Source: Hyaloraphidium curvatum SAG 235-1 (Eukaryota > Fungi > Monoblepharomycota). From it: a stretch of DNA of 64,000 bases. Under the pieces are notes generated by a model. That model searched no databases, was not told where the DNA came from, and saw only the letters and a program-made list of their open reading frames with translations. The stretch spans positions 1,178,001 through 1,242,000 of the forward strand of contig JAIVFI010000002.1 in the NCBI GenBank assembly GCA_025558095.1, in the 5' to 3' direction. This document shows positions 19 through 49,666 of the stretch, in pieces. A program made the position numbers and the translations under genes. Every line of letters starts with the position of its first letter. Position 1 is the stretch's first letter.

Positions 19-1103
19 TCACATCTCGAGAAAGGCAATCCCGTTGCTGATCACCTTGACCTTGCGCTCCGGCACAGAGGTCTCGAACGCGACCACCCTC
101 CGCCCGCTCTCCGCGTCCTTTCCCAGGTCCCACATCTCGGTCCGCAGCGATTCGCCCGGGTAGACGGGGCTGGAGAACCTGCAGCGGATCACGCGCAGCC
201 TGCCGGGCACGTTGGAGCACCAGCTCGAGAGCACGGCGCGGGAGGCGAAGCCAAAGGTGCAGAGGCCGTGCAAGATGGGGTTGGGGAACTGCTTGCGGGC
301 GTACTCGGGGCTGATGTGCAGGGGGTTCGTATCGCCCGAGAGTCGATCTGGCCGCAAAACAGTCAAAGAAGGTACTGAGGAACTCGCGACGACGAGACCC
401 ACAAACGATGGCCTGATCCGGCGTCGTCCGCTCCTCCACCACCTTGTCCGCCGGCCGCTGCGGCACTCTCCACTTTTCCGCCAGTTCGTCCCGAGGCCTC
501 TTCTTGCCGCCGAACCCGCCCGCGCCGATCACGAACTGCGTCGAGATCCATCGAGCCACTGGCTTCCCGAAACCCCGCTCGGCCAGTAGGTACTCCAACT
601 CCTGGATCATCCCCTTGCCGGCGTCGTACAGGCCGATGATAGAGGTGCGCATCTCGAAGCCGTCGCCCGAGTCGGGAGGAATGCCGTCGGGCGAAAGGAG
701 CTCAAAATGCTGCTCGCCGTGGACGCCCATGCCGTCCTTGGCCCCGGGGACAACCACCCTGGTCTTTGCGGTGCGGTCGAAGAAGGGGATCACGTCGAAT
801 GAGTCGCCTTTGTGCTAGCACGAGGGTTTAGCGACGCAGAACTCCAGGGTGGAGGCAAACACGAACCCGAAGCACGCATGGATAAGTTGGGAGAACAGAG
901 AAGCCCGGCGAGAGCTCATAGGTGAATCGCAGATCCGTTTCCCCGATGCCGACTCTGGTGAGAGGTTCGGGAACGAATCAGGTTGCGGTGGGGGCAGATG
1001 ACGCTCGGCAGACCACCCACGCGTACAGAATAACATCTCTTCGGTTCCACTTCACGGGCTCAACCCGCGGAGGGATCTTGCTGATGTCCGGAACGAGCGA
1101 CAT
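19..1103 (-). CDS. Peroxisomal-type enoyl-CoA hydratase 2 (double hot-dog/MaoC dehydratase), spliced
   Basis: Spliced translation gives WNRRDVILYA-VGIGETDLRFTYE...PTYP, VHGEQHF, and the hydratase-2 motif Y-RLSGDTNPLHISP...PILHGLCTFG, then FSSPVYPGE. At least 3 GT-AG introns. Ends FLEM*. Confidence 0.9.
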
Positions 1104-1358
1104 TGGTGGGAACGCGTCGCGGGAGACAAAGCGGGGACCACGATTGAACAGTCCCCGGCTGTCCGATCCGCCGGAAAGCGCGCAGAACCAAACGTTCTGT
1201 AGAGATTCGTAATCGCACGGCACTAGTTTGGCCGCGATGCGCCAAAGTGTCCGCCCCGGGGAGACGGCCGATCCCACAGCGCTGCGCCGCTTGCCGCTGA
1301 TCGGCGCCAGAACTTTCGTTGACAAACACCGAGCCCTCCCGCGCCGCTCCTCTGCTCC

Positions 1359-2531
1359 ATGCCGCCGGCGTCTGCCGCCGGACCCCCGGCCCGGCTCTCG
1401 CCGTTCGGCGAGGCGGTCGCCGGCGCCGCTGCAGCGGCGTTTGCGAACCTCCTGGTTCGTCCCCGACACGGGTGCGCTGCCCGGACCTGCTGACCGCCCC
1501 GTCTTGCCAGGTCTATCCGCTGGACGTGGTCTCGACGCGCATGCAGGTGCAGTCGAGGCGCCGCGAGGCTCAGGGGAACCTGCCCGACGGGAAACCGGGG
1601 CTGGATCACCACGCTTCGGTCGGGTACGCCTCGACGCTGGACGGCCTGGTCAAGATCTTTGAGCAGGAGGGCGTTACCGGACTATATGCCGGGTTGCAGA
1701 CGTCTATGGCTGCCACATTGTGGGTTCTTGGCCCGGCATGTGCTTCTTTCGCGCCCGTGACCCTTGCTGCCGCCGTCAGGCTGAACAACTTCTCCTATTT
1801 CTACGCGTATTCCATAATCCGCCGGGCATACATCCGCGCGAATCCCGAACCCCCTTCTACCATCGTCGAGCTCCTCCTGGGCATGCTGGCGGGCGCCTGC
1901 GCCCGAATCTGCACGACCCCGGTCAACGTCGTCACCACACGGTATGTTGCCCTCAACTGCGACCGCATTGGCCGTTTCTCACATTCGGACAATCAGGCAA
2001 CAAGCCCGCCCCGCCCTGACGTCCCTCGATATCCTCCGCGACATCCTCGACCGCGACGGGCCGAAAGGCCTGTATGCTGGGCTTCCCGCCGCCCTGGTGC
2101 TCACCGTCAACCCCGCAATCACATACGGACTCAACGAGCGGATGAAGACGCTCGGCTGGCCCAAGGGAGCGTTCGCCAGGGGCGCCCTGGGGAAGGCCGT
2201 GGCGACGATTGTCACATACCCGTACATTCTGGCCAAGGTGAAGCTGCAGTTCGGTGGCGGGGGAAGAAAATACTCTTCTGCGATGGAGGTACTTACGTCG
2301 ACGGTGGGAGATGAGGGTTTCTTTGCACTTTACAAGGTGGGCTCGGTTCGGCGTGCTTCATTTCCACATGTACTGAAACGACCCTCTCTTCAGGGGCTGG
2401 ATGCCCAGCTGTCGAAATCTGTGCTGACCCAGGCCATCCTGCTGGTGGCAAAGGACTGGATTGAAGCCCGCGTGCTCGCCGTCGTCGTGTGGCACTGGAT
2501 GCACCGCAATGGCCCTGCCAAGGTCGTGTGA
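1359..2531 (+). CDS. SLC25 carrier, peroxisomal adenine nucleotide/cofactor transporter (Ant1/PMP47/SLC25A17-like), spliced
   Basis: Starts MPPASAAGPPARLSPFGEAVAGAAAAAFANLL. Three carrier repeats: YPLDVVSTRMQ, TPVNVVTTRQQ, YPYILAKVKLQ. NFSYFYAYS and LVLTVNPAITY are typical of the Ant1/PMP34 subfamily. Confidence 0.85.
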
Positions 2532-2664
2532 AAAGTCTTGATTCGAACCCTTTGACCCTCGCTGCTCTCCGTTCGATAACCTTCTGCAATGTGTACATAA
2601 CACCCAAAGATGAAGTAGATACGATCTTGACTTGAACGCCTTCCATCCTCCTCCGCTGATTTTG

Positions 2665-3940
2665 CTAGCAGCAACCGTCGCCCTTGATGACCACAACGTC
2701 CCTCTCCCCTTCCGTTCCGCAGAGCGGCAGCTTGGTCACCTCGCTGTCGCCGACGACCGCCGTGTACGCCCATCCCTCGAACCGGGCCCACCCCAGCGCC
2801 GCCTCCCCGACAGCCACCCCCAGCATGGCGGCCACGAAGACCCAGATGTTGTATGACATGACGACGAGCATCACCACGTACGCCGCCGAGATGGACGGGA
2901 GGGTGCCCGCGAAGCGCAGCAGGGCGGCATCCAGCCGGGCACGGGGGGTGCGGATGCGGTCGCGCCGGCGGGCCAAGGTCGCGAGAAGGTCGCTGGTTGA
3001 AAATCAGCAATGGCAGTGCGACCAGTGCTGGAAACCGTACCGGACGATGGTGAGGAAGACGCTGCCGACGGCGATGGCGAAGATGGCGATGAGCGATGCG
3101 ACGAACTGGCCGTTGTCTGGATGCGGATGCGGCGGGGTAAACTACAGCTTGGTCACGGGGCCATGCATGCCGTAACCCACTGTTTGCAACCCATGTGTAG
3201 GAGAGGAGGTAGTCCCGGAAGCCGGCGTGGAAATACATGAGCATGTTGGGCGGAGGAAACCCGTCGCTGTTGGCAGTGCAGAGGGTGGTCGAGGCGAGCG
3301 GGCCGGAAGACGAGCACATGGAAGCATGGATGATGCACTGGCTCATCGTCGGCATCGCATTGCAGAGGTCCGAGTAGACGGCCTGCATCGAAAAGTTGTT
3401 GAGACGGGGGCGAAAGCGATGACTGCAGCGACCCACTAGCAAATCGCAGTTGGCGTAGGTGACGCCGCCAACGTAGGAGCATTTCTCGCATCCGGTCATC
3501 GTCATTTCGGTGCAGATGCTCTTCACGGCCGCGTTCACCGCGTCCGTTGTCGGGAGGCCCGGCAGAGCGGGGTTCGCGGCGCACTGCGCCACCACCGACA
3601 CGTTGCTGCACATCGAGACGTAGTTGCGGCATCCTCCCATCATAGACATTCCCGCGTCGGAGACGCAAGTGTCCGCTACGAGGCTCATGGGCGTGCAGAA
3701 GCCACCTGCATGCAGCGCCTGTGCGTTGTCCCCGCTCGAAGCGCACATGGCGGCAGCCGAGCAGCCTGTCATGAAGGGCATCGAAGTGCAGAGGGATGTG
3801 AGGTCGGCAGTGGCATTTGCGTCGGGGTATATGAACGAAGCGCAGGTGGCCGTGGTGGGGTCGGCTACGCAGGGTGCCGCCGCGGTGGCGCGGGCCCCGA
3901 GCAGCAGGAGGCCGGCCAGGAGACTGACGAGGGCGAACAT
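2665..3940 (-). CDS. Ctr (SLC31) copper transporter with signal peptide and Cys/Met-repeat ectodomain, spliced
   Basis: Signal peptide MFALVSLLAGLLLLGARATA. Repeats LCTSMPFMTGC, GMSMMGGC, ICTEMTMTGC, LCNAMPTMSQC. MLMYFH precedes TM1 (GQFVASLIAIFAIAVGSVFL). MxxxM motif MLVVMSYN, GxxxG (GVAVG) and C-terminal CC. Confidence 0.9.
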
Positions 3941-4183
3941 ATCTTCGGCACCGAACCGAGTAGGGGCACTTGGGATGAGAATCTGCTTTGTGGCGGCGCA
4001 GAGGGGGCGGAAGAAGGTTGTTGGCCGGTCGGCTCAGCTCGCCGGCCACAGGTCTTCCGGTTCGCTCCGAGGACTGCGGATCGGCGGCACAATGCGCACT
4101 CCGCAAGCCTGGCAGTGACCGGATCATTTTCTCGAGGTATATTTAATGCATCTGCGCTTTTCCTGCTGCGAGGTAAGGCATTC

Positions 4184-4237
4184 GGAGCGGCTGAAAGTTG
4201 GGACCGCTCCCTGGAGCGAAAATCGCTCATCGAGCTC
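4184..4237. promoter_or_regulatory. Cluster of inverted GCTC-core motifs in the Ctr divergent promoter (candidate copper-response elements)
   Basis: GGAGCGG(4184)/CCGCTCC(4204), CGCTCC-CT-GGAGCG (4205-4218) and GAGCGA-AAA-TCGCTC (4214-4228), with an AT-rich TATATTTAAT at about 4138. Confidence 0.3.
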
Positions 4238-4442
4238 CATTCGTGACCCGGGGTTCCGTCCGCAGCCGTGACGGTCGGTAATGAATGCCAGAATCGCGGA
4301 CATGATCATTCGGCGGGAACGAGGGCGGATGGAGGGGGTCAAAGAATGCCTGACTAAAGCAAGCTTCCGGTTGCGGCCGACGACCGCGAGCTGGAGCAAG
4401 CGGGGCGGTGCTCCGATTCCGAGCCCCATCCACACACGCAGA

Positions 4443-5549
4443 ATGGCGCTCACGGCCGTCCTCTTCGTCCTCACACTCGCGCTGGCCGCGATCTCAGCCG
4501 TAGCAGCTCAGCATGGCGGCATGCCTTCCATGAACAACACCGGCGGCGTCTTGCTGTCGGACCAGTGCGTCGTGACGCCCTCCACTACAGGATCCGTTCA
4601 TGGTCTCGCGTCTGCGGATCCCCTCGCTAATCTCGCTTCCGATTCTGCAAGTTGCGAGTACTACCAGCTGCCGCACCACACCTCCGTTGCCGACCTCGAC
4701 AACCTCTGCACTATGATGCCCTTCATGTCCGCGTGCTCCGTGCGCGACCTGTGCGCCGCGGGGGCGGTGCCGTACCTCAACGCGTCGGGATGGTGCAAGC
4801 CGTTTTCCCTTCTCGCTCATGTGTGCTCCGTGGACGAGGGGATGTCGAAGATGAAAGGCTGCGTGAACTACAACAGGTGGGCTCTGCCGTCTCTGCCTGC
4901 TCCAAATCTTCCTTGCAACTCACTCATTAGACTTCTTACGTGCATCCTACTGTGTAATGTCACTGCCGGCATGGTTGTCATCCAGTGCAAGGCCATCGTG
5001 CCCCTGCCCAACCTGCCTTCGACGATGCCACTCAACGCCGTGGTGAAGAGCATCTGCGAAGAAATGCCTTACATAAGCGGATGCGAAAAGGTGAACATCG
5101 ACTGCACATGGCCTTTTGAAGGTTGTTAACGGTTCACTAGTGCTCGTACGCCGGGAATGTCACCTTCGCCAACTGCGACCTGCTCGTAAGTCCCATCCAC
5201 TGCTCACGCTCGCCATAGCCACCAGCTCGGTGCATGCATCCCTTTTCAGAGCGTCTACAGCCAACTCTGCCGCTCGATGCCCACGCACACGCAGTGCTTC
5301 ATGATGAACACAATCTGCGCCGGCCCCACAGGTAATACCACCTTAGGCCAAGGGTGGAGCTACACGGCGTACCAAGGACAGACCTCGCCGCTTTCGATCG
5401 TTACTTCGACCAACGGGGTGGTTCCCAGCCCTACTCGGAGCATGACCACGGTCACGTCGACGAGCAGGCCGAGCGGTGGCAGGAGAGTGCACGCGGGGAA
5501 GCTGTGGCTCGCGGTAGCTGTCTTTGCCCTTCCTGTGTTCTTGAAGTAA
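4443..5549 (+). CDS. Secreted, probably GPI-anchored Cys/Met-rich copper-binding protein; paralog of the neighbouring Ctr ectodomain, spliced
   Basis: Signal peptide MALTAVLFVLTLALAAISAVAA. Repeats LCTMMPFMSAC, GMSKMKGC, ICEEMPYISGC, LCRSMPTHTQC are colinear with the Ctr ectodomain. Ser/Thr-rich stalk and hydrophobic tail KLWLAVAVFALPVFLK*. No Ctr TM domain. Confidence 0.8.
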
Positions 5550-5699
5550 GAGCTGGCCGAGTTGTTGCGTCGCAGATGACGCGATCTGCCACGTGTGGCA
5601 AAGTTCCAATCTCGCCATTCTCCCCCGACTTCCGCGTCTCCCGCACCCGCAGCCTCGTCACGAGACCAGCAAGGGACCTACCGTAGCACTCTGCGTGCC

Positions 5700-6917
5700 A
5701 TGTCAGCCGCAGCGCTTGACTCCGTTGCGCGCGGCGACGCTCCTTTCGCCTTTGAGCCGTTCGGTCTGCCCGCCAGCAACCAGCGGGCTCTCGGCGCGCC
5801 GCACTCCCCGGGCACCGTGTTGCCGCTTGCGCTGCGCCCTGCCGGCACGGACGGCGCCGATCTCGGTGCCGCGATCGCGGAAGTGCGCCGCCTGCAGGCC
5901 ACCGGAGAGCTCACCACCGCGCTCGCCAAGAACGGCGCGCTGCTCTTCCGCGGCCTGCCTATTCGTACTGCGAAAGATTTCTCCGAGTTTGCCCACGCCT
6001 TCGGCTTTGCCCCGCATGAAATCATCGGCATCGTCGTCGAGCGGCCCGAGCTCGCGCCCAACGTCGCCCCCGCCAACGAGTCTTCCAAGGAAGTGCTTAT
6101 ATATAACCACAACGAATCGCCCCAGGTGCCGCATGCGCCCGAGTACGTCATGTTTAACGCGCACCACATCGCTGCCGGCCTGGAAGGCGGCGAAACTCCC
6201 ATCAGCTCTAGCCTGGAGCTGTTCGAATTGGCCAGGCGCGAGATCCCCGAGTTCGTCGCCGAGCTGGCCGAGAAGGGCATACTCTCCCGCATTACGTACA
6301 CTGCGGAACCGCAGTACAAGGGCGGCTCCACGCTGCGGCAGGCGTTCGGCAAACACGTGCTGGAATCGGACCCGCCCCAAGTGCGAAGGGCAAAGATGGA
6401 GGTGCAGCTCGCTCGGTACGCGAGGGGCAAGCACACGACCTGGGAGTGGCAGGACGGTGGAGACACGCTTATCGTGACGCACCGCCTTCCCGCCATCCGC
6501 ACTCAGCCCGGGACCGGACTGGGGACGCTCTTCACCGGGCTGGCTGCGTACTGGAAGAATGCGCAGCAGCAGGCGCAGCAGGGTGCCGCCAGCGCGACGC
6601 AGGCGGCCCGAAAGAAGGTGACCGTCCAGACGTTCGGCGACGGCACCCCCATCCCCGATCGGTACCTCGCCAAGTTGGCCGAGATCACCGATCGGATCCG
6701 CATCCTCCACAAGTGGCAGGTCGGGGACGTACTCGTGTTCGACAACGTGATCGCGCAGCACGGACGTGAGCCGTGGAAGGGCGAGCAGAGCGATCGCGTG
6801 GTTCTGGCGAGCCTGTGGGACGGCCAAGTGCCTGGCGCGTACACCGACGCGGACTGGGCTCGGGTGGTGCAGGCGCTGGAGGATGTGGGATTTGAGGGCA
6901 AGCCCGCAAAGCTGTGA
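5700..6917 (+). CDS. TauD/clavaminate-synthase-like Fe(II)/2OG dioxygenase with PTS1 (AKL), intronless
   Basis: GALLFRG, HNE (HxE), GGETP, WQVGDVLVFDN...HGR. Ends GKPAKL*. Confidence 0.9.
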   Translation: MSAAALDSVARGDAPFAFEPFGLPASNQRALGAPHSPGTVLPLALRPAGTDGADLGAAIAEVRRLQATGELTTALAKNGALLFRGLPIRTAKDFSEFAHAFGFAPHEIIGIVVERPELAPNVAPANESSKEVLIYNHNESPQVPHAPEYVMFNAHHIAAGLEGGETPISSSLELFELARREIPEFVAELAEKGILSRITYTAEPQYKGGSTLRQAFGKHVLESDPPQVRRAKMEVQLARYARGKHTTWEWQDGGDTLIVTHRLPAIRTQPGTGLGTLFTGLAAYWKNAQQQAQQGAASATQAARKKVTVQTFGDGTPIPDRYLAKLAEITDRIRILHKWQVGDVLVFDNVIAQHGREPWKGEQSDRVVLASLWDGQVPGAYTDADWARVVQALEDVGFEGKPAKL

Positions 6918-7136
6918 AGTTGGAAGTGCAGTTGTATTGGCATCGTCTTGTGACCAAAGTTGTTGAACGTCGAAGAGGGGCGGGCGGCTACGAACGCCTC
7001 GGTCGGGTGGTGTCGGCTCCGGAGCGTCGCGCCATCGGTCAACATTCCGCACCCAGAGGTCCGACTCAAGACCCTCGGTCCGGACCATATCCCGCTCTGC
7101 TGCTCAGCGGACAGCGCTTTCGCTCCCGGCGCTGCG

Positions 7137-9315
7137 ATGGTCCTCTACCGCTCGCCGTACCCGGACCTGACCATTCCGAAGTCGGTTGCCGTTCCTTGCC
7201 TCCGTCGGCCTCGCACCGACGCATCTCTTTTTCCATAGGGTCAGCGTTTACGATCTTCTCTTCTCGTCGCCGAAGCCGGCTTCCTCGTCGCCGCTCACGG
7301 ACGTCACCGCTTCGGAGTCGGGACCTGTCGACAGTGCTTCGTGGGAGACGCGGGACCTCTTTATTGACGCCGGCAACGGCACGGCGTACACGTGGCGGGA
7401 CGCCAAGAAGAGGATAGAGGAGCTCGCGCGCGCGCTGCGGAACGTCGGGAGGGACTCGAGGATCCCCTGGTCGCTGCGGGAAGACGAGGTCGTGGGCACT
7501 TTTAGCCCCAACCAGTGAGGCCGTCGCTGTTGGCGCTCATTGCGGTCTTCTCATCCTCAACTTCCTCCAGCATTGACTTCCCGATCGTCGTCTGGGGCAC
7601 TCTGCGGGCCGGCATGGTCATGACGGCCGCGAACCCGGCGTATACTGTCGGCGAACTGGAACACCAGCTGTCCGACTCCAAGACCCGCATCCTGGTCACT
7701 TCCCCCGCCAACCTGCCGTTGGCCGCCGAGACCGCCGCACGGGTCGGCATCCCCGTCGCCAACATCGTGCTCATGGACTCGCGCACCGAGGACGAGCGCA
7801 AGAAGGGCGGGGTGGACCGGCACTACGCGGATTTCCAGGGCACGCGGCTGTGGACGGTCGAAGGGCTCGTTCACGTCGGGCGATCGCTGGCCCCGCTGCC
7901 CGCGATCACGTACGGGAACGAGATTGTCAACAAAACCTGCTACCTCATGTACTCCTCCGGGACTACCGGACGCAGCAAGGTGGGCTGCGCCACGCAGCGA
8001 CAAAGCTGTAGGCTCACGGCTGTTTTCTTTTCTTCCAAGGGGGTTGAGCAGACCAACGGCAACATCGTGGCCAACTGCCTTCAGATTCAGGCTTCGGTGG
8101 GTTCGGTTGCATTTCTCCGCTTCCAACCAGACTCATTTGTCGCACGAAACAGGAGAAGTATTTCATTCCCGTCGGCAAGCGGATGCTGGCCGTTCTCCCT
8201 ATGTACCATTGCTATTCCTTGACGTGGTGTGTCCACTTTTCCGTGTTCCAAGGCGCACCATTGGTCGTCATGCCTGGGTATGTCGTTGATCGGGTTGCGC
8301 TTTCTGGTTTTCCTCACCCGTGGAACCACCAGGTTCAACCTCGCCGCGCTCCTTCATACCCTCTCGCACTACCAGATCCACTTTGCCCACCTCGTCCCCC
8401 CGATCATGGTGCAGCTCGCCAAGATGCCCCTGGAGGAGCTCCGCAAGTACGACCTCACCCACCTCCGCTGGATCGCCTCTGGCGCCGCGCCCATGGGCGC
8501 CGAGACCGGCGACGAGGTCATGCGGAGACTGCCGCGGGCGAGGATCAAACAGGGATACGGGATGACGGAGCTGGCCCCCGTGTCGATCGTGGAGCGGTAC
8601 GGGCCGCCAGAAGACGACGGGACCGGGTGCATCGGGGTGCTGCTCCCGAACCAGGTCGCGAGGCTGGTGGATTTGGAGGGCAAGGACGTGGGGCCCGGCG
8701 AGGAGGGGGAGCTGCTCATCAAGGGACCGGTAGGTTGACTTGAAGCTTCGCGGCAGGGAGATCGGCTCATCTCGAGGTGCCAGAACGTGATGAAGGGCTA
8801 CCTCAATCGCCCAGATGCTACTGCCGAGACTTTCGACGGCGACTTCCTCAAGACCGGCGATCTGGCGGTCGTCGACGAGCAGGGGCGGTTCTTCATCCGG
8901 GACCGGCTCAAGGAGCTCATCAAGGTCAAGGGCTTCCAGGTCCCGCCCGCGGAGCTCGAGGCGCTCCTCCTTACCCACCCCGTCGTCGCGGACTGCGCCG
9001 TGATCAGCATCCCGGACGTGGACGGGACGGCGGGCGAGCTGCCCAAGGCCTTCGTGGTGCTGAGAGAGAACGTCGCGGACCAGGGGAAGATGGCGGCCGA
9101 GATCCAAGCATTCGTCGCGGGAAAGGTGGCGCACTACAAGCGGCTCACCGGCGGCGTGGACTTTGTCGACGTTATCCCGAAGAGCGCGAGGTAAGTTGGC
9201 GCCTCCGGATCTGTTGGTCGTCCTGATCGCCTCTCGTTCCAGCGGCAAAATCTTGAGGAGGATCTTGAAGGACAATGACGCTGCCAAGCGGCAAAGCAGC
9301 AAGGCGAAGCTGTAG
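7137..9315 (+). CDS. 4-coumarate-CoA-ligase-like acyl-CoA synthetase with PTS1 (AKL), spliced
   Basis: YSSGTTGRSK-GV, QGYGMTE, GELLIKGP, FLKTGD, DRLKELIKVKGFQVPPAELE, IPKSAS-GKILRR. Last exon ends RQSSKAKL*. Confidence 0.93.
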
Positions 9316-9452
9316 ATGAGGGGTGTACGTTCTCAATTAATTGCCGAATTGGACAAGCAATTGTCGAGCACGTTCGCATCTTGAACGGAGCGATGGTTGG
9401 CGCGGCGCGGCAGATTGTTTCGCCGCCACCGACTCCCACGACAATCTGACCG

Positions 9453-10743
9453 ATGGCCAGCGCCTCCGCGCCGTCAAGAGCACCCAGCGGCGCAACGCCG
9501 GACGGCTCCAGTAGGAATGTCTTCCCAGACTTGCCACTATCCGTGCTTGTCAAGGATTTCCTGGTTACGCCCGACGATGCCCGCGTTTTCCCGGCGACCG
9601 GCATGACGGCCCCCGACGACCGGATCCGGCTTTCCGTCCGTATGTTCGCGGACTCGGACGTCGAGGACGGCCTGGACATCCTGCTCATGCACGCGACGGG
9701 GGTGCCCAAGGTGCGGTTCCTGCCTGCAGCACATGACGTGCCGGAGCTGACTCCCGTGCCTCAAACGACACTAGGCCTGTTACTACCCTCTTGTGCCGAT
9801 GCTGTTCCACGGTCTGCCGAACGTCCGCTCGGTGATCACCTACGACGCCCGGAACCACACCGATTCCGCGCTGCTCAACTCCCCCGCGCTCCTCGCCAAG
9901 GAGAAGGACGGGTTCTGGGCGTGGGGCGTGGACGCTCCCGCGGACTGCTGGGGCGTCGTCCGCGCCTTTGGTCTGGACAAGAAGGGGCACGGGGTGGTCG
10001 GCGTCGGGCACTCTTTCGGCGCGGCGGTGCTGGCATTGACGGAAATCCAGCACCCGGGGACGTTCGAGCACCTCGTGCTAGTGGAGCCGGTGCTGTTTCC
10101 CGCGACGATGGCGAGGAGCGGGCCGCCAAAGGTCGTGGGCAGCGAGCCGCCCCCGAAGCCCAAGGAGGAGGCGGGGCGTCCGCCGGACCGGATCGCGCTG
10201 GCTGCGCGGCGGCGCGCCGTCTTTCCCACCCTCCAGTTCGCCATGGAGTCCTTTGGTTCCAAAGCTTTCTTCAAGACCTGGGACAAGACCATGTTCGGGC
10301 TGTACATGGAGCACGCGTTTTCGAACCTGCCTTCGGGGGAGGTGAAGCTCAAGACGTCGCCGCAGCAGGAGGCCATGAGCTTCGCGGGCGGGCACACGAT
10401 GATGTGGTGCTGGCCGAGGCTGAAGGAGATACGCGCGCGGACGCTGGTCGTTTCGGGACGGACGTCGGACCACCTGCTGATGAAGGTCGAGGGGAAGGAC
10501 GGCGTCATCATGTGAGCTTCCAATGGTCGAAGGGTGGATTACTTTGCTGACGTGCTCGTTCACGGCAGGTCCAAGGATCTGGCGGTGGTTTCGCTGATTC
10601 CCGGCTGCCAACATGTGTTCCTGGATTGCGGACATATGGTCGTTCAGGAGAGGCCGCACGAGGTCGGCGAGGTGATCTGCAGGTTCCTCGGCGGTGCCGA
10701 GTACGGACAGCCAAAGCTGGACGCCGCGGCCGCCAGGCTCTGA
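9453..10743 (+). CDS. Alpha/beta hydrolase (Lpx1-like) with PTS1 (ARL), spliced
   Basis: LLMHATGVPK, DARNHTDS, nucleophile elbow VGHSFG, LVEPVL, catalytic His in CGHMVVQERP. Ends DAAAARL*. Confidence 0.88.
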
Positions 10744-11034
10744 ACACGGACAGCCAATCTGGACGCGGCGATGGCCTGCCCTCACTACTTTCAGCTGATA
10801 GAGTAGATGGATGACTAGATCGACCTTAGAATCGTCGCGCCAACAGTGATCGACCCGAAGTCCGAGCTCCGGTGCCTTCGAACTCTACGATTCGTGTTCG
10901 CAGCAAGCTCCCGGTTTTAGCCGTTTCTCTTGTCGAGTGCCAGGGCCTTGGAGGAGACACGCTTTCACATGTTTTCCAGCCGCGACGCACCGCCATCAGA
11001 CCCCTTCCTCCACTCCCCGTTCTAGCTCGCAACG

Positions 11035-13814
11035 ATGAGCCTGCCCGCCGGGTTCCCCGCCGCCGCGCCGCCGCTGCCCGGGTCGGGCGACCTGCTCGCG
11101 TCGCTGCCGGTGGCCGAGCGCCGCAAGGCGCTGGAGAACCAGTCCAACTTCTCGCCCACGCGGCGCGACGGCGAGTCGCACATCCTCCGCCACCGCTCGG
11201 TGCCGTTCGACGTGCCGCTGCCGGAGCGGCCCGACCCGCTGACCGTGAGCCGCGCGCGCGCACGAGCTCGCCCGCCCTGACACGCCCGCAGCGCAACGTG
11301 TTCGACATCTTCGGCAACGGCCTCAGGTGCGTGTCGTCGCAGCGATAGCGGGCGCTCGGGGCCCCGTTTCCGCGCATGCGGCGTCTTGGAACGGGTTACC
11401 ACCGTCGCTTGGCCAGGAGCGGGTCGTGGAGGCCCGTTTCCGGGTGTGGGACCCCGCGGCGGAGTGTCTCCGCGAATGACTCCGCACCGGAGTGGCAGCC
11501 CGATCGGCCTTCGGTATGCCGCTATCGGCACCTGGCCCGATTGAAAGACGGCGCTGGCCGCGGGATTCGGCGTGCCGGTCGCTGATTCCGCGTTCCCGTC
11601 CTCCAGGAAGGTCCCGGACTTCCCGTGCCTGGGATGGCGGAAGCAGGAGGGCGGCCCGTACATGTGGAAGACCTACAAGGAGGTCAGTACCCGTGCTCGA
11701 TTGTTTCAAGGTACCTTTGCTGACCGGCCGGATAGGTCTACGAGGACGTCGAGGTCGTCGGCTCGGCCCTGATCAACGCCTGCGGCATGAAGCCCGGCGA
11801 GGAGGCCTTTGTCGGCCTCTATGCCAACAACTGCCCCGAGTGGACCATTGTCGACATTGCGTGCGCGGCGTACAGCCTGATCACGGCGACCATGTGGGCA
11901 GCGCCGGTCAAGGTGCCTGTGATCCCGTCTGACTCCGTCTGCCGCCGCCAGGTACCCGACCTTTGACGACGAGGCCATCGGCTACATCGTCAACCTCTGC
12001 GACATCTCCACCGTCTTTGTCCAGCGCGTCAACGTCGCCCGGCTGTTCGGCCTCGGGTCCAAGCTGCCTTCGATGAAGCACGTGATCGTCATGGACGACG
12101 AGCTCTCGGGCGCGGACCGCGACAAGGCCGGCCAGCTCGGCTGGAACATCATGAGCTGGAAGGAGTTCACGGCCAAGGGGCAGCAGGCGCGCGTGCCCGT
12201 GTGCCCGCCTTCGAACCCCAAGGCGATGTACTCGCTCTGCTTCACGGTGGGTCATTGCTGTGGGCACTTTGCTTTCAACATGTCTGACTTCGCCTGCTGG
12301 TGACAGTCCGGCACCACCGGCACGCCCAAGGGCGCGATCCTGACCCACGTCGGGATGACGGCGATGGTAGGTTGACTTCGTTCGGTCAGCTTGGCCGGCC
12401 CAACATGCCGCTCCTTCCAGATCACCGTCCTCCGCACCGTGTTCCCCAGCACTTTCTACACCCCCGGCGAGGACATCCACATCTCCTACCTCCCCCTGGC
12501 CCACATCTTCGAGCGCACCGCCATCCTGGCCATGTTCTACGGCGGCGTCGCCGTGGGCTACTTCCGCGGCGACAACCTCAAGCTGCTCGAGGACATCCAG
12601 GAGCTCAAGCCCACCTTCTTCAACGCCGTGCCCCGCGTCATCGGCCGCATCGTCGACACGGTACAGAACACGGTGGACGCGAGCGCGGTGGTCAAGTTCC
12701 TCTTCAACCGCGCCTACAACTCGAAGCTCTCCACGCTCGAGAACCAGGGCCTCGTGACCAAGGACACCCTGTTCGACCGCCTGCTCTTCAAGAAGATCCA
12801 GGCCGTCACGGGCGGCCGCGTCAAGTCCATGATCTCGGGCGCCGCGCCCATCTCGGCCAAGTCGCTCGAGTTCCTCCGCGTCGTCTTCGGGACCAACGTC
12901 TGCGAGGGCTACGGACAGACCGAGTCGCACGCGGCCATCACCATCACCTCGTTCGGCGACGTCTGGCTGCCATACGGGAACCACATCGGCCCCCCGGTGC
13001 CGTGTGTCGAGGTCAAGCTCGTGGACGTGCCGGAGATGAAGTACCTGGCGACGGACAAGCCGCACCCGCGCGGCGAGATCTGCTTCCGCGGGCCCAACGC
13101 CATGCTCGGTCGGTCCAAGTGGCACCCTTCGCCTGCTTCCATTCTGATCCCATCTTCTGACAGGCTACTACAAGGAGCCCGCCAAGACGGCCGAGACCAT
13201 TGATTCCGAGGGCTGGGTCCACACCGGCGACGTCGGCATGATCCTGCCCAACGGCTGCGTCAAGATCGTCGACCGCGTCAAGCACATCGTGCGTCGCGAC
13301 GTTGCCTCGATCCTTCGGCGCCTCTCACGCGTTTCCGTTTCCAGTTCAAGCTCCAGCAGGGCGAGTACGTCGCCCCCGAAAAGGTCGAGACCGTCTACGT
13401 GCGGTCCAAGTACGTCGCCCAGGCCTTCGTCTACGGCGACTCGCTCCAGCGCTTCCTCGTCGGCGTCATCGTCCCCGACGCGGAGCAGCTGCTCATCTGG
13501 GCCAAGGCCAACGGGCTGGGTGGCAAGACGCTGGAGCAGCTGTGCAAGGACAAGAAGGTGGAGGAGATGATCCTGAAGGACCTCCAGGCCGTCGCCAAGG
13601 CCAACCAGATCCCCGGGTTCGAGCAGTGCAAGGTCGGTCCGCGCCCTCGCGGCCCGTTTGGTCGCCTTTCTGACCCCCCGCGCAGTACATCCACCTCTCG
13701 CCCGACATGTTCACGGTCGAGAACGGCCTGCTCACCCCGACCATGAAGTCCAAGCGCAACGAGCTCAAGAAGTACTTCCAGAAGCAGCTAGACGAGATGT
13801 ATGCCCGCCTCTGA
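11035..13814 (+). CDS. Long-chain fatty acyl-CoA synthetase (ACSL/Faa2-like) with PTS1 (ARL), spliced
   Basis: FT-SGTTGTPKG, SYLPLAHIFER, EGYGQTE, PRGEICFRG, GWVHTGDVG, FKLQQGEYVAPEKVE, ENGLLTPTMKSKR. Ends LDEMYARL*. Confidence 0.93.
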
Positions 13815-13914
13815 GCCGGCTATGTGCTCCTATGTGCAATGATTGACAGCTGATTAATTGAAAAAGCGTCACATTGAAGAAGTTGCCGTCGGGCACATCG
13901 ACCGTCCCGCCGAT

Positions 13915-15165
13915 CTACAAGCGGGCTTTCGGCGCGTTGTCACCCTCGTAGATGCGGAACTGCATCCCATGCCTCTCTGCCATGTTCTTCTCCCACTCGC
14001 GGATCGCCGGCGTGATCTTCTGCCCCCTGAATCCTCCCCTCAATGCCGGCGTCTCGACGTCCTTGTACGCGGGTTTCCAGGCGTCGGGCAACATCGGCGC
14101 GTCCGGGCAGGCCAGCCAGAGCCTCAGGAGGTGCCGCTTCCTCTCGAACTCGGCGTGGTCCTCGTACCCGGTCCGCGAGTGCAGCACGATGTGGTTGTTC
14201 ATGAACATCATGTCGCCGGGGAGCATGTGGCTGCGGTAGCACATGTCCTCACGGGCAAGGATGGCGTCGAAGTAGTCCAGAGCCTCGAGCTGCTTGGGCG
14301 TGAGCCGGGGGACGTCGGGGAAGGAAATCTGCGCCGTGCGGATGTGGTTGCGGATGTGGCGGCACGCCCAGCTGCCGTCGGGACTGCGGCCCATGATCGG
14401 AGCGAGGTAGTGCGGAGGTTCCTGAGAAAGGACAAGGAGGGTCGGTCACGGCTCGGAGCGACCGATTTCCCGCGCTCGACATACCTCTGGCGCCTCCTCT
14501 CCCTGGCGACCGAACGTCATTGGCTGATAGAGCTCCTGGAGCAGGTCCGGCCGCTCCGCCAGCATCACGTTATGGGCCCGGATCGAGGACGAAGCGATGC
14601 TCTCGCCACCGCTGATCGCCACCTTCAAGCAGAACAGTCCTGCCACGTCGGAGCCGTCCGAGTGGAAATCGAGCGCGGACCGCGAAGTGTAGCCGCGGCC
14701 AGAACTGCCCCTGTAGTCGACACCCACATCCCTGACGTTCGTCAGGAACAGAGATTCCTTCCCCTGCGGTCGGGCGACGCCAAGGTAGAGGCCAATTCCC
14801 CAGAAGATGAGCTCGAGATCCTCGGTGGAGTGCTCCGCAACGGGAAACCCGCGGAGGTTGATGATCCCGTTGCCCTCTTGGAGCTCGTCCCGAATGGCCT
14901 CCAGCACGGGGAGGAACGCGTCCAGCGGGAAGTCTTCCGGCAGCACCGAGAACAGATTGACCGGTGAGGGGTGTTTGCTCTTCAGGTGGGCCAGCGCCGC
15001 ACGGAGGTCGGCGATTTCCTCGGGGTACACCTGGCGGTAGAGCTTCCCCGGTTCCGCCGCCTGGCGCTCCAGGTCCGCCCGTGTCCAGCCTCCATTAGGC
15101 CAGGAGATTTCGCGGATCGGGACCTCGACGTTAAACCTGGAGGGTTCCGGCCAGAGGGGAGGCAT
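13915..15165 (-). CDS. TauD/TfdA-family Fe(II)/2OG dioxygenase with PTS1 (ARL), one intron
   Basis: GNGIINLRGFP, LDFHSDGSDVAGLFCL (HxD), GGES, PGDMMFMNN...LHSRT, RHLLRLWL. Ends NAPKARL*. Confidence 0.9.
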
Positions 15166-37676: not shown

Positions 37677-38591
37677 TTACATCCTTGCGCTCTGGATGCT
37701 GCGGTCCGTCCCACTCCCGGACCCGAACCCGCCGATCCCGATCCGCGACCCCCGCAGGCGCCCGCCGACCACCATCTCCCTCAGCTCGGCATCCTCGACC
37801 TCGTTCCGATCCGCCTCCCGCCTTGCCCGCGCCGCATCCCTCGCCTTCCACCCCCTCGGCGCCCTGCCCATCTTCACCCTCCAGAACTCCTCCGACTGCG
37901 CGCGGTAGTGGTTCAGCCGCACCCCCTCGGGGCAGCCCGCCGGAACGCCGCGGCGGAGGAGGTGCCGGTGCACGCCGAACCGCGCCAGATGGGGGAGGCG
38001 GGCGGCGGATTTGTCCCCCGCGTGCTCGCGCGCGGCGCGGCGGACGAAGGATTCGCGCACCGAGGCGGGCTGCGAGGGAAGGCCGGAGGAGCCGAACATC
38101 CGCCACTTGCACGACACCTGCCCGACGGAGGGGTCGGCGAACGCGCGGCGCAGTTCGGAGGCGAGGGGGAGGGGGGTGGAGGAGTACATGAACTCGTCGA
38201 GGTCCACGACGAGGACGAGGTCGGCGCCGCGGGAGGCCAGCAGGGGGCGGGCCGAATCGTAGTGCCGCGGCTGCATGCCGCGGCCTTCTGCCGGCAAAAC
38301 GACGAGGTCCGCGCTGCGGTTCATTTTCGCCGCCGCCATTCGGGCCGTTTCCGGGGTGCCGTCCGTCGAGCCGTTGTCGAGCAGCACGACGAGGTCGGCC
38401 CCCTCGGCAAAATAGTGGGCGAGCCACTCGGCGACGATGTGCGACTCGTTCAGCGCGACGGCGAGCACGGCGAGGCTGCCCGGCGCGGGCACGTCGGAAA
38501 AGTCGTCGGGCGGGCGGCGGCCGGCCGTGAGCGAGAACAGGAGCGCGGCGGCGGCGAGGGACGCGAGCAGCGCGCGCCACCGCCGGCGCAT
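37677..38591 (-). CDS. Type II membrane GT-A glycosyltransferase (GT2_4/GT92-like), intronless
   Basis: N-terminal anchor. NESHIVAEWLAHY, LDNGSTDGT, VDLDEF (DxD), LNHY. Confidence 0.8.
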   Translation of the reverse strand: MRRRWRALLASLAAAALLFSLTAGRRPPDDFSDVPAPGSLAVLAVALNESHIVAEWLAHYFAEGADLVVLLDNGSTDGTPETARMAAAKMNRSADLVVLPAEGRGMQPRHYDSARPLLASRGADLVLVVDLDEFMYSSTPLPLASELRRAFADPSVGQVSCKWRMFGSSGLPSQPASVRESFVRRAAREHAGDKSAARLPHLARFGVHRHLLRRGVPAGCPEGVRLNHYRAQSEEFWRVKMGRAPRGWKARDAARARREADRNEVEDAELREMVVGGRLRGSRIGIGGFGSGSGTDRSIQSARM

Positions 38592-48727: not shown

Positions 48728-48982
48728 TGGACTGGATCGCGGTTCATTCGGGTGGAACTCTTCGTGTCTACATAGCACCGACCGGAGAATCGGAGGACGC
48801 CTCGGGAAAAGTGAGGATGATGGGTCGCGGGAACGCCGTCCGCGAGGGATGTTAGGGCGTGGATGGACCACGCCGAGTGGATCAATAATGCGATCCGATT
48901 GCTGCAGAAGAGTTCCGGCCGGAATCGCGGAATCAAGCGATCCGGTGAGGCGCGCTTCTGGGACGACCATAAACACCGACCA

Positions 48983-49666
48983 ATGTCTCCCGCCTCGCTA
49001 TCCTGCCGCTGCGGCAAGGTCCGGCTCCTCCTCGCCGATGAGCGCATGCGCGCGCGCACCGAGTGCTTCTGCGCCGACTGCCGGCAGCGCGGGCTCATCT
49101 CGGCCGCGCGGTCGCCGGCCAACGCGGTGCCCCCCGAAGTGGCGAGCTTCGACCGCGGCGTCGACCTCTACTACTTCTCCAACGCGCTGATCGTCGACGA
49201 GAAGACGCGGGAGCTGATCCGGTTCTCCAAGCTGCGCCCGGACGCAAACAACACGACGTGCATGTCGGCGTGCTGCGGGACCCTGCTCTGCGGGATCCAC
49301 CCCGTCTACGGCGGCACGACCATCTCGGTCAACGCCGACAGCTGCCGCGTGTCGGTGCCCTCGGTGCTCCCGAACCAGCTCGTGATCTTCGGCTGCGACG
49401 CGCCGGCGGACAAGTGGGCGGCGAGGACGGCCCGCGCCGACGTGCCGATGGTGCACTCGTCGCCCGAGGGTGCGGCCGCGGCGGCGATGCAGGCGTTTTT
49501 GGCGGCGGTGACGACGCCGGTCGAGGAGCGGCACAAGGGGCCGGGGGTGGCGACGTTCGAGGAGCTCTGCGGGGGCAGGTTCATCCTGGACAACTCCTTC
49601 TACGACGAAAGCCGGGCGGCGGTGCCCCGTCCGGCGAATACGTCGACGGAAAAGGCGAGGATGTGA
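48983..49666 (+). CDS. GFA/CENP-V/Mss4-like zinc-binding protein, intronless
   Basis: LSCRCGKV...ECFCADCRQ...ACCGTLL. Confidence 0.65.
   Translation: MSPASLSCRCGKVRLLLADERMRARTECFCADCRQRGLISAARSPANAVPPEVASFDRGVDLYYFSNALIVDEKTRELIRFSKLRPDANNTTCMSACCGTLLCGIHPVYGGTTISVNADSCRVSVPSVLPNQLVIFGCDAPADKWAARTARADVPMVHSSPEGAAAAAMQAFLAAVTTPVEERHKGPGVATFEELCGGRFILDNSFYDESRAAVPRPANTSTEKARM

Follow-up and report, generated by a model that had tools for sequence, protein, structure and literature searches.

Known examples of gene clusters whose products are addressed to one organelle come from a small number of toxin, siderophore and glycolipid pathways in dikaryotic fungi. Here we describe a candidate cluster of this kind in Hyaloraphidium curvatum SAG 235-1 (Monoblepharomycota), in which five consecutive genes from four enzyme families, packed in 9.5 kb, each end in a canonical peroxisomal targeting signal type 1 (PTS1). 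The genes encode two acyl-CoA ligases, two Fe(II)/2-oxoglutarate dioxygenases and one serine hydrolase, and lie in a 64,000-nucleotide stretch of contig C2 (bases 1178001-1242000; hereafter the window) in a 31.9 Mb assembly of ~65% GC. A first-pass annotation of this DNA knew of no description of such a cluster in early-diverging fungi, and our literature search agrees: it returned nothing on peroxisomal TauD proteins in fungi, on such clusters in zoosporic fungi or on this enzyme set, and nothing relevant for PDB 7N7V or for Monoblepharidomycetes together with peroxisomes.

The closest precedent is the AK-toxin (EDA) module of Alternaria alternata, in which AKT1 (carboxyl-activating), AKT2 (an alpha/beta hydrolase) and AKT3 (an enoyl-CoA hydratase) are clustered and are peroxisomal by virtue of a C-terminal tripeptide (PMC9134587). 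The likeness lies in the clustering of a 4-coumarate-CoA ligase (4CL)-like ligase and an alpha/beta hydrolase that both bear peroxisomal tripeptides (PMC9134587), and it is a likeness of enzyme types. For the AKT proteins localization was shown to depend on the tripeptide, whereas the H. curvatum signals are read from sequence. The AKT cluster, moreover, belongs to a dikaryon, is attached to a polyketide synthase (PKS), an HMG-CoA synthase and a P450, and includes neither TauD nor ACSL enzymes. Its hydratase is an enoyl-CoA hydratase with a PTS1; the hydratase in our window is of the MaoC type and ends in ..FLEM without a signal, and it is at this member that an AKT-type module – ligase, hydrolase and hydratase, all with PTS1 – breaks down here.

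Peroxisomal CoA-ester chemistry is also established for fungal siderophore synthesis, where SidI, SidH and SidF carry out the peroxisomal steps (PMC3709128), and for mycophenolic acid maturation, where peroxisomal PbACL ligases work with the hydrolase MpaH', which frees the product from CoA (PMC12591190). The shared feature is an acyl-CoA ligase that starts the chemistry; unlike the H. curvatum block, both pathways have known substrates and products, lack 2-oxoglutarate dioxygenases, are only partly clustered and are found in Ascomycota. A different parallel is mammalian peroxisomal alpha-oxidation, which proceeds through an acyl-CoA synthetase, phytanoyl-CoA 2-hydroxylase (PHYH) and 2-hydroxyacyl-CoA lyase. 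There, too, CoA activation is followed by Fe(II)/2-oxoglutarate-dependent hydroxylation in the peroxisome, but PHYH belongs to Pfam PhyH rather than TauD and bears a type 2 signal (PTS2), the genes are unclustered, and the window contains no lyase gene.

Outside eukaryotes, the subfamily of one of the two dioxygenases, TauD2, occurs at 50-55% identity in GntR-TctC-TauD-PEP_mutase/ICL operons on Burkholderiales-type contigs (L010-L012). The context of these operons implies that an imported carboxylate is hydroxylated and then undergoes C-C cleavage. Unlike TauD2, the operon TauDs lack both a PTS1 and introns, and no acyl-CoA synthetase gene lies beside them.

Five consecutive genes end in peroxisomal targeting signals

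The block comprises the following genes; homology searches of the multi-exon genes were run exon by exon.

5700..6917, plus strand: TauD1, a single-exon gene of At3g21360 / AN2698 type (Pfam TauD, 5e-32; PDB 1y0z, 4e-23)
7137..9315, plus strand: 4CL/luciferase-type acyl-CoA ligase, multi-exon (Pfam AMP-binding and AMP-binding_C, three exons)
9453..10743, plus strand: alpha/beta hydrolase (ABH) of Abhydrolase_6 type, exons 9453-9710, 9775-10511 and 10569-10743 (Pfam Abhydrolase_6, 2e-8)
11035..13814, plus strand: long-chain acyl-CoA synthetase (ACSL), ten exons (Pfam AMP-binding, 2.5e-38)
13915..15165, minus strand: TauD2, of a mainly bacterial subfamily, exons 15165-14485 and 14421-13915 (Pfam TauD; NCBI model P0121)

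Within the acyl-CoA ligases, the 4CL-like enzyme falls in the 4CL/luciferase clade, with 4-coumarate-CoA ligase 3a9u as its top PDB match (6e-22), and ACSL has all the usual motifs of its family. Where a metabolic cluster is defined by at least three adjacent non-homologous enzyme genes, the five-gene block qualifies.

The PTS1 ends proposed for these genes in the first-pass annotation are all present. Each fits the canonical pattern (S/A/C)(K/R/H)(L/M), with AKL, AKL, ARL, ARL and ARL on the tails KPAKL, SKAKL, AAARL, MYARL and PKARL. TauD1 is one open frame that ends in ..FEGKPAKL (..VVQALEDVGFEGKPAKL), its AKL being encoded at 6906-6914. The last intron of the 4CL-like gene, 9191-9242, precedes the last exon SGKILRRILKDNDAAKRQSSKAKL, with AKL at 9304-9312 and the stop codon at 9313-9315. 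ABH has introns at 9711-9774 and 10512-10568 and ends in ..KLDAAAARL (ARL 10732-10740, stop 10741-10743). ACSL has nine introns, the last at 13633-13685, and ends in ..QLDEMYARL (..LTPTMKSKRNELKKYFQKQLDEMYARL; ARL 13803-13811, stop 13812-13814). TauD2, with an intron at 14422-14484, ends in ..DNAPKARL (..RIYEGDNAPKARL; ARL 13918-13926, stop 13915-13917).

We compared these ends with spliced contigs from a public H. curvatum run (X1), which confirmed the C-termini of the 4CL-like ligase, ABH, ACSL and TauD2, four of the five. The 4CL-like introns 8729-8782 and 9191-9242 are both spliced out in X1 contigs, both ABH introns and all nine ACSL introns (GT..AG) are skipped, and the last exon of TauD2 is spanned by a contig with a splice at 14423. 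The 4CL-like and ACSL ends, which had been predicted to need splicing, are thus both seen on transcripts, and their last-exon frames are fixed, as had been argued, by the family motifs SGKILRR (ligase) and LTPTMKSKR (ACSL). The deposited NCBI models P0241 (ABH) and P0121 (TauD2) end in AAARL and PKARL. For TauD1 the end is read from the single open frame, X1 confirmation covering the other four genes; the tail lies in the same frame, 10 codons past the conserved C-terminal block of the family.

Some further features of the transcripts and models deserve mention. X1 word depth over the 4CL-like gene (8600-9387) is 11,000-33,000, against ~800-1,400 for the hydrolase, ACSL and TauD2; this ligase may be very highly expressed, though contig depth is a poor measure and cannot rank genes. 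The stops of ACSL and TauD2 lie 100 bases apart on opposite strands (13812-13917), and the two transcripts probably overlap, because a single X1 contig crosses both 3' ends. No deposited H. curvatum model of TauD1 was among the search matches, so the public model may be missing or different.

The run of signals exceeds the background rate

We estimated the frequency of PTS1-like ends in a 294 kb sample consisting of the window, the 30 kb adjoining it on the left and 200 kb from other parts of contig C2, which together make up <1% of the genome. Termini were called with a crude codon-usage score, trained on confirmed exons and applied to coding-like stop-terminated frames; exon ends that read on to a stop within an intron are counted as well, and last exons that are very short escape the caller. 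Outside the block, PTS1-like tripeptides were found on 3 of 201 termini (1.5%; upper 95% limit 4.3%), and the same pattern occupied 0.33% of positions inside coding frames. Because the background is only 1.5%, a run of five is far beyond chance: with ~11,000 genes, a number assumed from gene density, 8e-6 such runs are expected per genome, or 1.6e-3 at the upper limit. The first-pass claim that no later gene in the window has a canonical PTS1 was mistaken, since two coding-like frames have ARM as their last residues and so match the same pattern: a GT2-like glycosyltransferase frame (37677-38588, minus strand, stop 37677-37679) and a weakly GFA-like frame (48824-49666, plus strand, stop 49664-49666). 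Two such ends are what the background rate predicts.

The five genes are also not recent duplicates, because TauD1 and TauD2 have no significant similarity and the 4CL-like ligase and ACSL are only 28% identical (over 92 residues).

We give a probability of roughly 0.5 to the reading that these five genes for enzymes of the peroxisome matrix are a lineage-specific cluster with an older ACSL/TauD2 pair at its core, and that their products act as one pathway. The tails predict import of all five proteins into peroxisomes, and the genome encodes peroxins (three Pex2/10/12-type genes and Pex14). Inside the peroxisome, ACSL and the 4CL-like ligase would activate carboxylic acids, whether fatty acids or others, as CoA thioesters, the two unrelated dioxygenases would hydroxylate these acids or their CoA esters, and ABH would cleave an ester or thioester to release the product; a nearby carrier gene, described below, might supply ATP or CoA. 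Such a route could be catabolic, through alpha-oxidation-like hydroxylation, or biosynthetic. The cluster would have been assembled from parts of differing origin – a bacterial-type TauD2, an AKL-tailed TauD1 and a near-orphan hydrolase – each of which gained a Pex5 signal.

TauD2 and its linkage to acyl-CoA synthetase genes

TauD2 scores 55 bits against Pfam TauD (PF02668) on exon 1, carries the motif HSD..H (read from P0121) and matches PDB 7n7v (2e-23) and FrbJ (3e-18). Its relatives include three eukaryotic orthologues at 60-65% identity; the rest, at ~50-55%, are on bacterial-type contigs or bear bacterial labels, among them Burkholderiales and Rubrivivax. In a maximum-likelihood tree the eukaryotic TauD2 trio forms one clade (SH-aLRT 100) that is nested several nodes deep among bacterial sequences. 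Both bacterial contexts examined are the GntR-TctC-TauD-PEP_mutase/ICL operon, and the bacterial homologues have unrelated C-terminal residues and no PTS1. Contamination was considered and ruled out, because the TauD2 intron is confirmed on a transcript and the gene lies in a 1.3 Mb eukaryotic contig. The best reading of these comparisons is that TauD2 derives from an old transfer from bacteria and subsequently gained its intron and PTS1. By analogy, the operon context, with its carboxylate-binding protein and C-C lyase, suggests that TauD2 is a carboxylate hydroxylase.

The three eukaryotic contigs that bear TauD2 (L009, L033 and L035; ~55% GC) come from public runs and metagenomes. On all three, TauD2 is tail-to-tail with ACSL, as in the window. 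The ACSL proteins of these relatives end in SKL, ARL and SRL, and their TauD2 proteins in AKL, GKL and SVL. One relative (L009) additionally has a 4CL orthologue that ends in ..ASKAKL, 6 kb from TauD2.

A second association of this type is found within H. curvatum itself. A TauD2 paralogue on contig C9 (618166-622864; L037, L048), 39% identical and ending in ..TKSKM, is head-to-head with an AMP-binding gene; among solved structures, the closest to its product is the very-long-chain acyl-CoA synthetase FATP2. TauD2-family genes therefore lie beside fatty-acid-activating genes twice, with other partners and in other orientations, and no other observation hints as strongly at a functional link. 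Three further TauD2 paralogues in the genome have no PTS1-like end. Downstream of the C9 pair lies an ArsH-like FMN reductase gene.

TauD1 and the hydrolase

TauD1 scores 112 bits against Pfam TauD (PF02668) and carries the motif HNE..H, as read from its sequence. Its best 120 relatives are 64-69% identical and nearly all from Pezizomycotina. PTS1 is found in 0 of these 120 orthologues, and because they end at about ..WAQVVQALDG, the last 10 residues of TauD1 constitute an extension that carries the signal. A TauD1 paralogue on contig C34 has no PTS1-like end. In Aspergillus nidulans and a xylarialean fungus the TauD1 orthologue is paired with a major facilitator superfamily (MFS) transporter, and no ligase or hydrolase partner was found in either. 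Identity of 64-69% to Pezizomycotina orthologues is unusually high for a protein of the monoblepharid lineage and reflects either strong constraint or fungus-to-fungus transfer.

ABH is a near-orphan without known orthologues: the databases contain six relatives, of which the closest is 34% identical, and a PDB search gave no match; its nucleophile elbow is GHSFG. The deposited model P0241 (295 aa) begins within exon 2 and omits the transcript-supported exon 1. An X1 contig that covers this upstream exon from 9535 to its end at 9710 continues at 9775, and with the in-frame ATG at 9453 added to the transcript-joined exon, ABH has 389 residues. Exon 1 carries a ..LLMHATG.. stretch. Paralogues lie at C11:366316-373256, where two copies are 6.6 kb apart, and at C23:367350-368198 (L044, L046, L047); one paralogue, on C11, ends in ..AQAKL and another, on C23, in ..GGAKI.

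These tails bear on whether the signals work at all. Were some of them masked or in a weak context, one or both TauD enzymes or the hydrolase would be cytosolic, and the block would be either a pathway cluster or a coincidence. Import of the five proteins is predicted from their sequences, and ~1.5% of other coding-like ends bear such tripeptides. Acidic residues lie shortly before the signal in the ACSL tail (..DEMYARL), yet the signal is kept as SKL, ARL and SRL in the relatives. Two of the relatives' TauD2 ends, GKL and SVL, are non-canonical, whereas all five H. curvatum ends are canonical AKL or ARL. The only obvious feature of the TauD1 extension is its AKL end, and paralogues of ABH and TauD2 bear such ends too. 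We consider non-functional signals improbable.

Neighbouring hydratase, carrier and copper genes

Four genes precede the block in the window.

19..1103, minus strand: stand-alone MaoC hydratase 2 (Pfam MaoC_dehydratas, 8e-25), ending in ..GIAFLEM
1359..2531, plus strand: mitochondrial-carrier-family gene, possibly of Ant1/PMP34 (SLC25A17) type (Pfam Mito_carr on two pieces)
2665-3940, minus strand: Ctr copper transporter (Pfam Ctr, 7e-10 on 2668-2976)
4281-5549, plus strand: Cys/Met-rich paralogue of the Ctr ectodomain (open reading frame)

The gene order across 19-15165 is thus hydratase 2, carrier, Ctr, ectodomain paralogue, TauD1, 4CL-like, ABH, ACSL and TauD2. The first-pass annotation had treated the hydratase, a peroxisomal carrier and the PTS1 genes as one unit that might continue to the left. 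The hydratase drops out of this unit: it has neither a PTS1 nor a PTS2-like N-terminus, its orthologue in a relative ends in ..GIAYVAV, three genes separate it from the PTS1 block, and its membership in the cluster is not supported. Nor is the unit contiguous, since the carrier is cut off from the block by the Ctr gene and the ectodomain paralogue, neither of which is peroxisomal. Nor does the cluster extend leftwards: the adjoining 30 kb contains a cyclase-family gene ending in ..PVAIF, a large unnamed gene and others, and no PTS1 ends.

The carrier itself is assigned more weakly than proposed. It belongs to the mitochondrial-carrier family, the only family (Mito_carr) returned by an ESM Atlas search; the Ant1/PMP34 link comes from automatic names of ~40%-identical relatives. 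The closest named ones, at 38-46% identity, are 'Mitochondrial substrate carrier family protein Q' (Neolecta) and 'ADP/ATP carrier protein' (chytrids, Allomyces), automatic labels that we take to derive from the SLC25A17/Ant1 group (the Dictyostelium SLC25A17 homologue or ANT1). That the carrier is of the Ant1/PMP34 type is plausible, and its association with the PTS1 block is uncertain. Hydratase 2 stands head-to-head with the carrier across 255 bases, and the same pair occurs in a relative (L050:7735-10711); the pair is conserved independently of the PTS1 block.

With copper-uptake genes of the Ctr type next to it, the block might serve, jointly with them, to produce a copper-binding metabolite. 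What speaks for this is the adjacency of the Ctr transporter and its ectodomain paralogue; the block contains no chelator-type backbone enzyme, none of its enzyme families indicates metal ligands, and Ctr genes are absent from the ACSL/TauD2 and carrier regions of the relatives. We regard this idea as very improbable.

What survives of a cluster organized by organelle or pathway is the PTS1 block, with its adjacency, its four families, its non-duplicate members, a run beyond chance, peroxins in the genome and a linkage that in part recurs in relatives.

One pathway or separate peroxisomal enzymes

We weighed the one-pathway reading against the possibility that these are separate peroxisomal housekeeping enzymes – a Faa2-like beta-oxidation ACSL, a Pcs60-like ligase, an Lpx1-like hydrolase and two unrelated dioxygenases – brought together by inherited synteny of the region, by rearrangements within a compact genome or, at the most, by a common expression domain. 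Each of these families has stand-alone peroxisomal members, and the 4CL-like ligase, ACSL and ABH with PTS1 are ordinary peroxisomal proteins for which no shared pathway is needed. Intergenic distances are 100-300 bases everywhere in the region, so adjacency is cheap. Even so, at the 1.5% background a run of five is expected only ~1e-5 times per genome.

Gene order in the relatives bears on both readings. Conserved linkage holds for ACSL/TauD2 in 3 of 3 relatives, with 4CL nearby in one, but part of its force is lost to general regional synteny that takes in non-peroxisomal genes. In L050, a contig from the same sample as L009, the head-to-head hydratase and carrier are followed by an inositol phosphatase gene, which lies at 17.3-19.5 kb in the window; a kinase and a sulfate transporter are further neighbours common to H. 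curvatum and the relative. On L009 a large unnamed gene, not a PTS1 gene, stands between 4CL and TauD2, and in H. curvatum the same gene lies just left of the window. The PTS1 genes that are packed together in H. curvatum are thus interspersed or elsewhere in the relative, which, without an outgroup, fits a tightening of the cluster in H. curvatum as well as a loosening in the relative.

Several of these observations weigh against a single pathway. The region as a whole is loosely syntenic, with order and orientation reshuffled and non-peroxisomal genes included, which makes conserved linkage a weaker sign of selection. Conservation of the ACSL/TauD2 linkage may itself be neutral, since a convergent spacer of 100 bases offers breakpoints little room. 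Neither TauD1 nor ABH was found close to the ACSL/TauD2 pair in any of the three relatives. No motif common to the promoters emerged from the 7-mers and 8-mers of the upstream regions, the shared words being GC-rich ones that are frequent across the whole window, and no backbone synthase of the PKS, nonribosomal peptide synthetase or terpene type was found in 19-15165 or the 10 kb leftwards. We also looked for co-transfer of the bacterial operon partner. A PEP-mutase/ICL homologue of 55% identity exists on another contig (C19:693282-694124; L052) as a single open frame ending in ..ADAEAK; because it is unlinked and lacks a PTS1, the bacterial two-step logic was not simply transplanted.

On the other side, the TauD2 family adjoins acyl-CoA synthetase genes twice, with differing partners and orientations, and PTS1 was gained secondarily in two members, which suggests recruitment to a common place. 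A set of separate enzymes is the main alternative explanation, one that we consider less likely to be right than wrong.

A possible history of the block and its significance

The one-pathway reading can be extended to a more specific history, which we put forward as speculative and on balance unlikely in its full form. Monoblepharid-type fungi would have taken up a bacterial carboxylate hydroxylase (TauD2) and given it a PTS1. Its coupling to acyl-CoA synthetases of the peroxisome, namely ACSL in four taxa and, in the case of a TauD2 paralogue, a FATP-like ligase, would have created a peroxisomal route of fatty or dicarboxylic acid hydroxylation separate from PHYH-based alpha-oxidation. H. curvatum would then have recruited TauD1, with its 10-residue AKL tail, and a lineage-specific hydrolase to give the five-gene cluster.

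If the five proteins act together, the locus would be a compact case of the assembly of a peroxisomal pathway, and the steps of that assembly would be acquisition of a bacterial enzyme by horizontal transfer, addition of a three-residue signal, visible in the tail of TauD1, and clustering of the genes. The locus also suggests, for two TauD subfamilies so far uncharacterised, a function that can be tested directly; the AN2698 type, one of the two, is widespread in ascomycetes.

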